From the sequence record MK773491.1: a DNA stretch of 64,000 nucleotides. One strand, written 5' to 3'. This document shows, one piece after another, positions 25,347-54,099 of this stretch. Positions within the stretch are counted from its first letter, which is position 1. Each line of letters opens with the position of its first letter. Both the position numbers and the translations under genes were made by a program. A model generated the notes under the pieces. That model searched no databases. It saw nothing but the letters and a program-made list of their open reading frames with translations, and was not told the origin of the DNA.

Positions 25347-27731
25347 ATGGCAAATTTTCAGCCTCGCTGGGACTTGAAAGCTGATACAACTGTGATTTCG
25401 GAAGGTGAGCAAACTTATGTTCGCATTCAATTAAGAAAAAATGATGACGGTACTAGCCTTGAGTATAAATTAAAAGATGAACAGTACTTAGAATTAACTT
25501 ATACTATTTCTGGAAGCGGAGAAACATTAGACGAACGTGATTTTGAACTTTATGTTGGTGAAGATATAAGTAAGCTAGTTAATATTAAAGATGGTACAAC
25601 GGGCATTAGAACAATCTTTGGTCAGCATGTAGTTAAATTGTCTAAAAAACAATTCAATCTTGCTAGTAATACTCAAATAATTGATGTATACTATATGAAG
25701 TTAGTTTGTGTTGATGACGGTATTTGGGATGGCCCTGAAAAACTTCAATTCACATTAAACACAATGGATGAGGTAACATTAACAGATGACCAAATTTCAA
25801 ACCAAGAATCAGCAGGTACTATTGGTAATAATCGAGTTGAAATAAATTATAATGACAGTAATGAAATATGGGTTACACCAAGTGTGATTGCACGTGGAGA
25901 AAAGTACACGATTGGTGCGTTAGGATATGGTTCAGATAGTCGTTTATTCGTTGATTCATTTGGACGTACTCGTATTTTTGATGATGAAATTGATATCAAT
26001 GAATATCCTAATGATAGTTCGAATCGAGTATTTTATCCTACATATAAAATTGAAAGAATTTCAATGAATAGTATACCTACTGAACATATAACAGGTAGCG
26101 GTACTATTTTAGTTCCACAAACTTCAGATTTAATTGAAGAAACTGACATTGTTATTATGGATACATTGGGTAATTTTGTTAGTACTGGATTGAAGTTTAA
26201 TGCAAATGGTCAAATATTACAAACGATGATATATGAATCAGACCCAATTGATGCTTATTTCAGGGCGACGATTGTACCATTAACTTCCTACTATAAATCA
26301 CCATCTGATGCATTTTATGTTGGTAAAAGATTCAAAGCATATCAAATGTGGGTTTGTCCAGATGATCACACATACATTAAGGGTAACGTACAACCGGGAC
26401 ATTTGTACCAATTAAAAGATAACGTTATCTATCCGTATGTTATTAAATCAGAATATATCAATGGTGTAGAATATGCATTATTTGAAGAAGAAATGTGGAA
26501 TGATTTAGGTGTATATTCGGTTAAACTTGGTGGTGATATTATTAATCAAACACGCCTATTCCGTATATTAGTAAATGCTAGTACAGGTGGTGGTATCGAT
26601 TTTGAAACTGATGCCAACTTAGGTAGAATTCACGTTGGTGAGTACTTTGGTCATACAGTTTATCCTGTCATCAAAGCAAGTGGTACTTTTGTTACTTACC
26701 GAGTAGACTATGATTCATCGCCTGATGACATTAGAAAGTACGGTATTGATTTAACGGCTGATGGATTTATGGTCGGTACTGCATATGCTAGAAGTAAGGA
26801 TTTCTCAGCTAACGATGATATTAAACTTGAATTTGATGTTATAGCAAACGAAAAGAGTGGTGCAACTGTTACTAAACGATTCAACATTACAATTATTCGT
26901 GGTTTTGGACAGAACTTCCTAACTGCACACATTGCACCAAGTAAGACTTTCGAACGTGCATGGTTTTCTAGCATTGCAACATCAAACTATTATTTAAACA
27001 AAACTTACTACCGGGAAAGTGATGATAGATATGGTATACAAAAGATCCCACGTCTGCTATTGAAAGAAAACTTTGTCTCCCAGAACTTTAATTTTGTTTC
27101 CATTAAAGAAACTAAAAAGTTGTTATCAAAGACTATTGTTGACCCAGATTTTGGTGCTCCAGTACCGAATGGTGTCTTCTCATTAGTAATGGGTAATTAT
27201 AAGATAACATCTGCACTTGACAATCTCGGAAATGTGGTGTATGATTTACTCTACCGTGAACTTCATCCATCAGGTACACGTGTTGATGTGAGCATGAATC
27301 CTCATGTTTATACGACAACGAACAATGATGTGTTTGCTGAAATATTTGGTTTGCGTCAGAATGTATTCAAGGCGGTTGGGGAAGATGTAACAAACCTATA
27401 CACTGACCCTGATGACTTCCGTGATCGTGCATTGGTAGTTCCTCCAATAGCTGGATTATCAGATGAAATGACTGATACAGTCCCACGTTTCATGAATCAC
27501 CCGTATGAAGAATATGGTTTAAAACCACAATTCATGCCTATACTACCTGTTGCGTATTTCAAACCCGGTCAAGCAGAAGCATTCTTTACTAAACTTGTGC
27601 AAAGTAATGAGCACAGTACTTTAGTAAATACCGAGTTCGAAGTACATGGTGTAGAATTTACTTTCCACACTTCTGAATATGAATTATATGTGAAAGATAA
27701 ATTTATTATTCCATTAGTAGGTAAGCAATAA
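25347..27731 (+). CDS. large virion structural protein (baseplate/tail-like)
   Basis: Beta-rich, late promoter, GGAG RBS supports ATG 25347. Confidence 0.55.
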   Translation: MANFQPRWDLKADTTVISEGEQTYVRIQLRKNDDGTSLEYKLKDEQYLELTYTISGSGETLDERDFELYVGEDISKLVNIKDGTTGIRTIFGQHVVKLSKKQFNLASNTQIIDVYYMKLVCVDDGIWDGPEKLQFTLNTMDEVTLTDDQISNQESAGTIGNNRVEINYNDSNEIWVTPSVIARGEKYTIGALGYGSDSRLFVDSFGRTRIFDDEIDINEYPNDSSNRVFYPTYKIERISMNSIPTEHITGSGTILVPQTSDLIEETDIVIMDTLGNFVSTGLKFNANGQILQTMIYESDPIDAYFRATIVPLTSYYKSPSDAFYVGKRFKAYQMWVCPDDHTYIKGNVQPGHLYQLKDNVIYPYVIKSEYINGVEYALFEEEMWNDLGVYSVKLGGDIINQTRLFRILVNASTGGGIDFETDANLGRIHVGEYFGHTVYPVIKASGTFVTYRVDYDSSPDDIRKYGIDLTADGFMVGTAYARSKDFSANDDIKLEFDVIANEKSGATVTKRFNITIIRGFGQNFLTAHIAPSKTFERAWFSSIATSNYYLNKTYYRESDDRYGIQKIPRLLLKENFVSQNFNFVSIKETKKLLSKTIVDPDFGAPVPNGVFSLVMGNYKITSALDNLGNVVYDLLYRELHPSGTRVDVSMNPHVYTTTNNDVFAEIFGLRQNVFKAVGEDVTNLYTDPDDFRDRALVVPPIAGLSDEMTDTVPRFMNHPYEEYGLKPQFMPILPVAYFKPGQAEAFFTKLVQSNEHSTLVNTEFEVHGVEFTFHTSEYELYVKDKFIIPLVGKQ

Positions 27732-44518: not shown

Positions 44519-44547
44519 GGGACAAACTAGGATTTATGTGATATAAT
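44519..44547 (+). promoter_or_regulatory. phage promoter, class GGGACAAA-N10-TGTGATATAAT
   Basis: Directly upstream of tRNA-Ser. Confidence 0.75.
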
Positions 44548-44555
44548 ATAATTAC

Positions 44556-44646
<91 letters not shown>

Positions 44647-53125: not shown

Positions 53126-53423
53126 AGTTAAACCAGTAGAAATTGATATTTATATTGGAGAATTAGTTAAATCTGCTATTCCTCATATGACAATTGAAGA
53201 TGTAGAAAAAGTATTACGCATCTTAGTTGAACAAAAATTTCGTGAAAATGATCCTACGATCCCAAAAGATGCAGAAATGAATCTTTATTTTAAATTGTGG
53301 GAAAAATATAGCTTCACCGATTATCATAAGAATGAAGATGTATATTCCACTGTTCGTAAATTTAACGAAGAAGAATTGCAGTACTTGATTGCTATTGAAG
53401 CTGTAATGTCTGTATTCAAATAA
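53091..53423 (+). CDS. hypothetical protein
   Basis: 110-aa ORF. Confidence 0.6.
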   Translation: MSKVKIKGTVTEVKPVEIDIYIGELVKSAIPHMTIEDVEKVLRILVEQKFRENDPTIPKDAEMNLYFKLWEKYSFTDYHKNEDVYSTVRKFNEEELQYLIAIEAVMSVFK

Positions 53424-53443
53424 TGCCGCTATGCGGCATTTTT
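53422..53443 (+). terminator. intrinsic terminator
   Basis: AATGCCGC-tat-GCGGCATT plus TTT. Confidence 0.75.
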
Positions 53444-53446
53444 CTT

Positions 53447-53475
53447 GGGACAAAATCAGGTTCATGTGATATAAT
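53447..53475 (+). promoter_or_regulatory. phage promoter, class GGGACAAA-N10-TGTGATATAAT
   Basis: Directly upstream of the tRNA-like gene. Confidence 0.75.
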
Positions 53476-53483
53476 ATAATTAT

Positions 53484-53565
53484 CGGGGCGTATCTCAACG
53501 AGCTTCTAACTCGTCTTTAATCGAGTAACTGGAGTATGCGGGTTCGAGTCCTGCCGCCTCGACCA
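53484..53565 (+). tRNA. atypical tRNA-like RNA: TCT (Arg) anticodon arm, no D arm, G3-U70 acceptor, CCA
   Basis: CGGGGCG/CGCCTCG-A-CCA; only TATCTCA before ACGAG-CTTCTAA-CTCGT; 23-nt extra region; GCGGG-TTCGAGT-CCTGC T arm. Confidence 0.7.
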
Positions 53566-53580
53566 CTTTTAAGGAAATAT

Positions 53581-54099
53581 ATGTTAGATTTGAGTAAAGC
53601 AGTTATAGATAAAGGTGTTGGGTACTATTATGTGTATGCACCTGAACATGAAATGGCGAATGCTGCTGGAAAAGTTTATGTTCATAGATATATTGCAGAA
53701 CAATATTATGGAATTAAATTGAATCCATCATTACAAGTTCACCATATAGATGAAAACAAACTTAATAATGATCCATTAAATTTACAAATAATGACTAGTA
53801 GTGAACATGCAGCACTACATAACAACGGAACTAATACCGAATATGAATGTTTCACTTGTAAAAAGAAATTCATTCATTGGTCGTCTGATGAACGAAAATA
53901 TTGCTCTCAAGCATGTTCGAAGAACGATCCGACAAAAAGAAAATTCGATATTTGTAAGGAAGAATTACAAGAATTAGTATACATGTATCCAGTAACAACA
54001 ATTGCTAAAATGTTTGGAGTCTCAGACGTCGCAATTCACAAAAGGTGTAAAAAACTTGAAGTATTAAAACCACCAAGAGGATATCATTTAAAGAAATGA
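53581..54099 (+). mobile_element. free-standing HNH homing endonuclease
   Basis: YVHRYIAE..VHHIDENKLNNDPLNLQIM...H; CxxC Zn finger and C-terminal HTH; AAGGA RBS. Confidence 0.85.

Follow-up and report, generated by a model that had tools for sequence, protein, structure and literature searches.

All known bacterial transfer RNAs (tRNAs) are stated to be cloverleaf molecules (PMC11551756). The engineered D-arm-less 'mini HisT' shows that a tRNA lacking the canonical D arm can be accepted by a bacterial synthetase, EF-Tu and the ribosome, but it is an artificial molecule with a plain loss of the D arm, which E. coli was evolved to use (PMC11551756). Here, a natural RNA gene is described in which the D-arm elements are reordered instead. 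It occupies 82 nt on the plus strand of a stretch of 64,000 nt from record MK773491.1 (hereafter the window; positions are counted from its first nucleotide), which is identical to the terminal 64 kb of the Salmonella jumbo phage 7t3 and is also matched by SE_PL and PHA46. From the sequence evidence it is proposed, with a probability of about 0.75, that the RNA is a functional AGA-decoding phage tRNA-Arg(UCU) with a rewired core; judged by covariation among its relatives, the D arm is relocated, not missing.

D-armless mitochondrial tRNA-Ser(UCU/GCU) of nematodes and mammals (PMC7609411) likewise has a short connector at the place of the D arm, and the UCU-type anticodon with which some of these tRNAs read AGN codons is a coincidental likeness. 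In the mitochondrial tRNAs, however, this connector forms no base pairs, only a short variable region is present, the elbow no longer has its contacts between D loop and T loop, and these tRNAs depend on dedicated synthetases and EF-Tu. In the window RNA the connector nucleotides 11-13 pair further downstream, a D-loop-like strand persists with its GG, and the host is a bacterium. The tRNA-like domain of tmRNA also lacks a D stem in the usual position and shares G3:U70 and A73 with the window copy. Unlike the family to which this copy belongs, tmRNA is invariably of alanine identity, lacks an anticodon arm and contains pseudoknots together with a reading frame for the tag. In the circularly permuted tRNA genes of the red alga Cyanidioschyzon merolae the order of the segments is altered, and the transcript is circularised and re-cut to a normal mature tRNA; at the phage locus no sign of re-joining was seen, and the mature RNA itself would be rewired. 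Canonical phage tRNA-Arg(UCU), such as those of the Salmonella sister phage Munch (CPT_Munch_400), T5 (T5t25) and T4, have the same anticodon loop CUUCUAA and the same type of T arm as the window RNA. The Munch tRNA additionally shares the acceptor 5' start CGGGGC, the promoter and the genomic slot, and AGA decoding is presumably common to both. The canonical molecule, in which a D hairpin is present and the variable loop has 5 nt, scores 68 bits with the Rfam tRNA model; in the window RNA (31 bits) the two strands of the D stem flank the anticodon arm, and the nucleotides of the D loop stand before the T stem.

Along the RNA, the elements follow each other as acceptor 5' strand, U8-A9-U, D-stem 5' strand, anticodon arm, 7-nt bulge, D-stem 3' strand, U-A-A-Y-U-G-G-A-G-U-A-U, T arm and acceptor 3' strand (Table 1). 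Many features of a tRNA could be recognized, namely a 7-bp acceptor stem (C1-G72, G2-C71, G3.U70, G4-C69, G5-C68, C6-G67 and G7-C66), a discriminator, an encoded CCA, a T arm with a UUCRANY loop and a 5-bp anticodon stem, with the anticodon UCU at 53505-53507. The cloverleaf feature that the RNA lacks is the D hairpin that would lie between nt 9 and 26. Its D-arm slot consists of 7 nt (UAUCUCA, 53491-53497), and the partner strand lies 3' of the anticodon arm, in the 23 nt (53515-53537) between this arm and the T arm. An earlier note on this DNA, made from the letters alone, had pointed out the acceptor stem with G3-U70 and A73, the CCA, the 7 nt, the anticodon stem with UCU and the 23-nt region, and had concluded that the RNA is not a normal cloverleaf tRNA-Arg, which was confirmed by the absence of the D hairpin from its usual place. 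The T arm, which it had called perfect, is present, but one of the five pairs is G.U.

With the Rfam tRNA model (RF00005) the window RNA scored 31.2 bits, marginally over the gathering cut-off of 29 bits and with 15 model positions deleted at the D arm; its relatives scored 31-35 bits. ARAGORN called no tRNA in the window RNA, and in GenBank the RNA of 7t3 is labelled 'tRNA-TERM'. The minimum-energy fold of the window copy favours an alternative hairpin, ACUCG/CGAGU, with an 8-nt loop containing UUA. This alternative anticodon hairpin was rejected because the relatives do not keep it, and the 'tRNA-TERM' label probably stems from it. Assignment to the class II tRNAs, which have a long variable arm, was likewise rejected, as no conserved hairpin is found in the 23 nt.

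The covariation check in relatives that the earlier note had suggested was run on an alignment of 45 unique family sequences, and four helices were found to covary. In this alignment 94.5% of the cells were paired and the covariation score was 0.748, compared with 0.195 for shuffled columns (0 of 500 shuffles reached the observed score) and at most 0.16 for slid partners. All seven pairs of the acceptor stem covary, with 99.4% of the cells paired, as do all five pairs of the anticodon stem, and the T stem covaries too. The fourth helix, here called D', is formed between nt 11-13 (CUC) and 53523-53525, the first of two GAG triplets in the 23-nt region, resulting in the pairs 11:42, 12:41 and 13:40. 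It is paired in 100% of the 45 sequences, with both sides changed in 24 of them, and among the 64 unique family members collected it occurs as nine Watson-Crick triplets: CUC/GAG, CGC/GCG, CAG/CUG, CGG/CCG, CAU/AUG, CUU/AAG, UCC/GGA, CCC/GGG and CAC/GUG. Positions 14 and 39 are usually A.C or C.A in the family and form a standard pair at times. Pairing of nt 11-13 with the second GAG (53532-53534, within UGGAG) was rejected, as zero double changes and 21 broken cells were observed. This covariation, a purely comparative line of evidence, supports the D' helix, and the D arm that had been reported as missing was found in another place: its 5' strand CUC pairs with GAG inside the 23-nt region.

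The D' helix is followed by a D-loop-like strand, A-A-Y-U-G-G-A, in which an A stands directly after the GG in all 64 unique members. More fully written as A-R-Y-U-G-G-A...A, this strand resembles the D loop of the Munch tRNA-Arg, AGUUGGAUA. Also the 13 members that were obtained with a search pattern leaving the strand free all keep (U/C)GGA. Nucleotides of the kind that build the tRNA core are invariant: the equivalents of U8, A14, A15, G18, G19 and A21, the U before the T stem and the UUCRA of the T loop. As equivalents in the window, A14/A15 at 53527-53528, G18/G19 at 53531-53532, A20 at 53533, A21 at 53536 and U48 at 53537 are proposed. The earlier note had stated that the D-loop A20 needed by E. 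coli arginyl-tRNA synthetase (ArgRS) is absent; the A after the GG, placed as in the Munch D loop (UUGGAUA), speaks against this, and its fit to the A20 pocket of ArgRS is proposed here.

Table 1. Positions of the RNA gene, its parts and the adjoining features in the window.
Feature	Position	Strand	Remarks
Intrinsic terminator of the preceding gene	53422-53440	+	8-bp stem, then T run; annotated as terminator in Munch
Sigma-70-type promoter, extended -10	53447-53475	+	GGGACA, 17 nt, TG-n-TATAAT; 10/12 matches
Candidate rewired tRNA-Arg(UCU) gene, whole	53484-53565	+	79 nt to the discriminator, then encoded CCA; 82 nt in total
Acceptor stem, 5' strand	53484-53490	+	Partner 53555-53561; G3 is 53486, U70 is 53559
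Connector U8-A9-U10	53491-53493	+	Same in the whole family
D' helix, 5' strand	53494-53497	+	CUC (53494-53496), then A 53497
Anticodon arm	53498-53514	+	5-bp stem, 53498-53502/53510-53514; 7-nt loop CUUCUAA; U33, A37
Segment non-homologous to Munch	53498-54094	+	RNA from nt 15 on (3' five-sixths) and HNH gene
7-nt linker (bulge)	53515-53521	+	CUUUAAU; family consensus C-G-U-U-A-A-Y; joins anticodon stem to D' 3' strand
D' helix, 3' strand	53522-53525	+	C 53522 opposite A 53497; GAG 53523-53525
Relocated D-loop-like strand, UAACUGGAGUAU	53526-53537	+	Nearly invariant among the 64 unique members
T arm	53538-53554	+	5-bp stem including one G.U pair; loop UUCGAGU
Acceptor stem, 3' strand	53555-53561	+	
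Discriminator A73	53562	+	
Encoded CCA	53563-53565	+	
HNH_3 homing-type endonuclease gene	53581-54099	+	172 aa; Pfam PF13392, E = 4e-12

BLAST with the 82 nt yielded 204 GenBank phage records, of which 195 matched over at least 80% of the length, and three pattern scans of IMG/VR gave at least about 90 loci; together, 64 unique family sequences were collected. One of these scans, with a looser pattern, produced mostly chance matches, with at least three new members among the matches listed. A covariance model built from the 45 unique sequences gave 93.6 bits for the window copy and 83-98 bits for the members, compared with at most 35 bits for ordinary tRNAs. Carriers include Felixounavirus, jumbo phages of the Asteriusvirus type (PBECO4, CMSTMSU), T5-like Klebsiella phages (Sugarland, Roth50), Vequintavirinae (KPP-1, A5-4) and Streptomyces phages such as BoomerJR, so that the hosts of the carriers span Enterobacteria to Streptomyces. 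A scan of 185,579 prokaryote species genomes gave three matches, all on metagenome-assembled contigs that are short and either tRNA-dense or HNH-bearing, assigned to Saprospiraceae (L203), Neisseriaceae (L204) and Culicoidibacterales (L205). These are probably phage contigs binned into metagenome-assembled genomes; if the host assignments hold, the host range exceeds Proteobacteria and Actinobacteria.

In most of the 204 records the gene is unannotated, is labelled 'tRNA-OTHER' or 'tRNA-TERM', or lies under the start of a coding sequence annotated as 'hypothetical protein' or 'HNH endonuclease'. Felix O1 (NC_005282), for example, has an unannotated family gene at 25951-26029 (L211, 552-630); the annotated start of its ORF45, an HNH gene, overlaps the tRNA 3' end and is probably placed too far upstream. 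The unannotated and mislabelled genes expose a blind spot of tRNAscan-SE, ARAGORN and Rfam, and phage tRNA repertoires and codon-compensation analyses would therefore be short by one arginine tRNA. A full-text literature search, which included sequence strings, found no description of the family, with most subscription journals lying outside its coverage, so that an earlier description is possible; the rewired tRNA family is probably new to the literature.

With respect to amino acid identity, all anticodons of the 64 members are arginine anticodons (UCU in 61, and CCU, UCG and ACG in one each). C35, U33 and A37 do not vary; at position 36, 62 members have U and two have G. The discriminator is a purine (A or G) in 59 of the 64 (A73 in 25), and 42 members encode the CCA. 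For bacterial tRNA-Arg, the identity elements are A20, C35, U/G36 and A/G73 (PMC9976931); the family matches them at positions 35, 36 and 73, and the A after the GG is a candidate for A20. G3:U70, the major determinant for alanyl-tRNA synthetase (AlaRS; PMC7609411), is found in eight of the 64 members and changes between close relatives, being G.U in PBECO4 (L006, L062) and G-C in CMSTMSU (L008) and L217. It is rare and switching, and alanine identity or a tmRNA-like role is therefore not what selection maintains.

Both of these roles had been raised in the earlier note, and at the level of the family neither is upheld. In a form of the first that is confined to the enterobacterial-phage clade with G3:U70, including the window copy, AGA would be decoded by an alanine-accepting or dual arginine/alanine tRNA. 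The window copy does combine G2-C71, G3.U70 and G4-C69 with A73, and the same G3:U70 acceptor stem is shared by Felixounavirus, 7t3 and Roth50. Yet A73 is changed to G in Roth50, PBECO4 and KPP-1, the conserved set is that of arginine, and alanine at 15% of the arginine codons would be costly, which together with the scarcity of G3:U70 and its replacement by G-C in close relatives makes this explanation improbable. In the second, the RNA would mimic the tRNA-like domain of tmRNA and act as a sponge for SmpB or EF-Tu. The D stem absent from its usual place and the G3:U70 and A73 of the window copy would suit such a mimic, but the G3:U70/A73 combination is not conserved in the family, the covarying anticodon arm with arginine anticodons has no counterpart in tmRNA, and neither ARAGORN nor Rfam called a tmRNA; this explanation is considered extremely improbable.

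A role as an arginine tRNA is also suggested by the tRNA sets of the carriers, which nearly always lack a canonical tRNA-Arg(UCU). None was found in 7t3, in the Felixounavirus VpaE1_ev78 (26 canonical tRNAs), in Roth50 (25) or in KPP-1 (25), while Munch and T5, a relative of Roth50, have a canonical tRNA-Arg(UCU) and no family member. Five or more canonical tRNAs accompany the family member at 54 loci, and among their canonical arginine genes ACG predominates (19). Where the canonical genes are ACG, CCG and UCU, the family member has CCU (L064), and where they are GCG, UCG and CCU, it has UCU (L057). AGA is rare in Salmonella. In the long plus-strand open reading frames of the window it makes up 14.6% of the arginine codons (35.8% GC). 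For Felix O1, the genome paper names Arg(ACG) as the sole arginine tRNA, notes an over-use of AGA and remarks that a matching tRNA 'might have been expected' (PMC3185647); if used, the family gene would account for this 'missing' tRNA.

The earlier note had further considered a decoy for anticodon nucleases or for sensors of uncharged tRNA. In a broader form, the RNA would be a non-translational mimic of tRNA-Arg that baits a host factor, such as an arginine anticodon nuclease or a modifying or sensing protein, and would not be used on the ribosome. Phage tRNAs are known to oppose tRNA-cleaving defences (PMC10264068), the anticodon loop is extremely conserved, and the odd core could block normal use. 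However, a decoy does not need the full set of translation features, all of which are kept in the family: the 7-bp acceptor stem covaries, the discriminator is a purine, 42 of the 64 members encode CCA, the T loop is canonical and a base resembling A20 is present. Moreover, the anticodons vary among arginine ones only, complementing the canonical set of each phage by filling its gaps, and at the same promoter the RNA takes the place of a canonical tRNA-Arg(UCU). A mimic of this kind is therefore regarded as unlikely, and at the level of the family the decoy inference was not supported.

This replacement became apparent from the comparison with Munch, which is 98% identical to the window through 53497, with homology coming back at 54095. 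The segment in between stands in for 76 bp of Munch, which comprise the remainder of its canonical tRNA-Arg(UCU) and a short spacer. The Munch tRNA is called by ARAGORN, and the 5' strand of its D stem, GCUCA, is similar to UCUCA in the window. Its promoter is nearly identical to that of the window gene, where the own promoter claimed in the earlier note was indeed identified, sigma-70-like and ending 8 nt 5' of the first base of the RNA. The terminator further upstream isolates the RNA gene from transcription coming from that side. A near-identical promoter also precedes the tRNA-Ser gene at 44556, and the promoter cassette, TCTTGGGACAAA, about 10 nt and TGTGATATAATATAATTA, is repeated before single tRNA genes (53447-53483, 44519-44555 and also upstream of 46921), which makes these genes look like separate transcription units. 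The tRNA-Ser (44556-44646, plus strand) is a class II tRNA with the unusual anticodon ACU, not GCU; an ACU tRNA was also called by ARAGORN within the 'RNAX' region of T5 (L225, 17432-17505, minus strand).

The HNH gene starts 16 nt past the CCA with no terminator in the gap, and the RNA and the HNH gene are therefore probably co-transcribed. Homologues of this HNH gene are found immediately 3' of the same RNA on three unrelated contigs, L050, L205 and L025, with identities of 55, 43 and 34%, respectively. The genomes of 7t3, SE_PL and PHA46 contain the HNH cassette; Munch and fENko-Kae01 do not have it at this site, and the boundaries are sharp. An exclusive linkage between the HNH gene and the RNA was rejected, as the HNH family is widespread without the RNA (e.g., in phiKZ and Bacillus phages) and most copies of the RNA lack an HNH gene. 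In the simplest reading, homing-type recombination would move the tRNA among phages, but this leaves its conservation unexplained.

The same recombination would be the origin of the RNA if it were a decaying remnant of a tRNA-Arg that hitch-hikes with the homing endonuclease. In line with this, the RNA lies directly 5' of the HNH gene in the window, the pair replaces a canonical tRNA-Arg, HNH_3 genes stand 3' of the RNA in six of 29 distinct downstream contexts, and ARAGORN rejects the RNA. Four helices are preserved by compensatory changes in phages that infect Enterobacteria, Streptomyces and further hosts, which would not be expected of a remnant. Next to most copies there is no HNH gene, and the HNH family is widespread away from the RNA; this origin is largely refuted and very improbable. 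A normal relative, of which the window copy would be an unexpressed deletion, had been named as a finding that would overturn the earlier note. The Munch gene is such a normal relative, but the window copy belongs to a covarying family and is no deletion.

For the tRNA-Arg(UCU) with a rewired core, the following course is proposed. The gene and the HNH gene would have arrived as one cassette, overwriting the canonical tRNA-Arg(UCU) in this genome. Transcription would start from the own extended -10 promoter, and the mature 3' end would probably be the encoded CCA. In the molecule, the D hairpin would be opened, so that the CUC strand (nt 11-13) leads directly into the anticodon stem, while the GAG strand would be placed past the anticodon arm, behind the conserved 7-nt bulge, and the D-loop nucleotides (the equivalents of A14, A15, G18, G19, A20 and A21) would run as a single strand into the T stem. 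A D' helix of 3-4 bp stacked on the anticodon stem would give a limb with about the normal number of layers, and the relocated GG would dock on the T loop to form the elbow. The three altered backbone links (from nucleotide 9 to the helix, from 21 to 48, and from 43 to the helix via the bulge) join nucleotides that are neighbours in a normal tRNA, and the molecule would thus be expected to remain L-shaped. The host ArgRS would read the A20 equivalent, C35, U36 and A73, and the tRNA would supply decoding of AGA (and AGG) to AT-rich phage genes where the host tRNA is scarce. This specific fold is put at slightly better than even odds.

Several observations weigh against the proposed tRNA. By thermodynamic folding, the 3-bp D' helix was recovered in one of the 45 members, and the anticodon stem itself was kept in the minimum-energy folds of 17 of them. 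The mapping of A20, G18 and G19 and the L-shape are inferred from the sequences, and the D-loop-like strand was part of the first search pattern, which makes its invariance partly built in; this is partly offset by the BLAST set and by the pattern that leaves this strand free. In the clade of the window copy, with G2-C71, G3.U70, G4-C69 and A73, mischarging by AlaRS is possible. At a few loci (L048 and L222) canonical as well as rewired UCU genes are present, and the exclusivity is thus not absolute. The copy of the Klebsiella phage fENko-Kae01 (OR228459; L003, 1605-1690), 99% identical to that of the window, shows one additional A on the 3' side of the acceptor stem and a C at the discriminator, without an HNH gene next to it; the extra base suggests that the RNA is dispensable or decaying there, or that a sequencing error is present. 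Finally, public runs labelled as RNA gave flat, low-depth contigs at a Felix-type locus, as phage DNA would give, and none of the public RNA runs was shown to contain the window locus.

The rewired form of the proposed tRNA may be neutral, may evade a D-arm-dependent factor, or may shield the gene from the linked endonuclease. As an adaptation, it would still be accepted by ArgRS, EF-Tu and the ribosome while offering neither a canonical D arm nor the gene sequence of one, an idea that is regarded as rather unlikely. The gain would be an escape either from a factor that reads the D arm or elbow or from the linked homing endonuclease, both of which are tentative suggestions; if such a factor exists, a host or rival-phage tRNase, a modifying enzyme or a defence sensor would be conceivable.

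Provided that it is aminoacylated and takes part in translation, the RNA is a natural counter-example to the cloverleaf, which textbooks and recent papers regard as universal for tRNAs on bacterial ribosomes, and would be the first natural, horizontally spreading non-cloverleaf tRNA in bacterial translation. The same nucleotides would then make the tertiary contacts on a differently connected backbone, which would separate topology from geometry in the tRNA core and would provide a ready scaffold for the engineering of orthogonal tRNAs. Some of the best-studied hosts, E. coli, Salmonella and Klebsiella, are infected by carriers, which include Felix O1 and T5-like, rV5-like and jumbo phages, and with the canonical and rewired alleles swapped at one promoter, Munch and 7t3 form a clean natural pair for experiments.

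Other RNAs that are tRNA-shaped and non-standard are likewise located in phage tRNA clusters, among them the tRNA-like RNAs of T5 (RNA1, RNA2 and RNA3) and a second 'tRNA-OTHER' of Roth50. A kinship of the family with the stable tRNA-like RNAs of T5 was rejected, since T5 contains no match above 35 bits to the family model. The annotation of T5 (NC_005859, 30284-33949 and 40848-41566; L225) lists eight stable RNAs whose function is not given, including three that are called tRNA-like, and as they fail the family model, several unexplained RNA species appear to be present in phage tRNA clusters. The 'tRNA-OTHER' of Roth50 (PQ657810; L005, 113-197), likewise no relative of the family, has normal acceptor, D and T arms and a 19-nt extended hairpin that replaces the anticodon loop. 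It scores 35 bits with the Rfam tRNA model and may be related to the stable tRNA-like RNAs of T5. In the Klebsiella phage KPP-1, ARAGORN reports two 'tRNA-???' with 2-nt 'anticodons' in the same cluster as the family gene (L209, 2980-3049 and 4678-4752).

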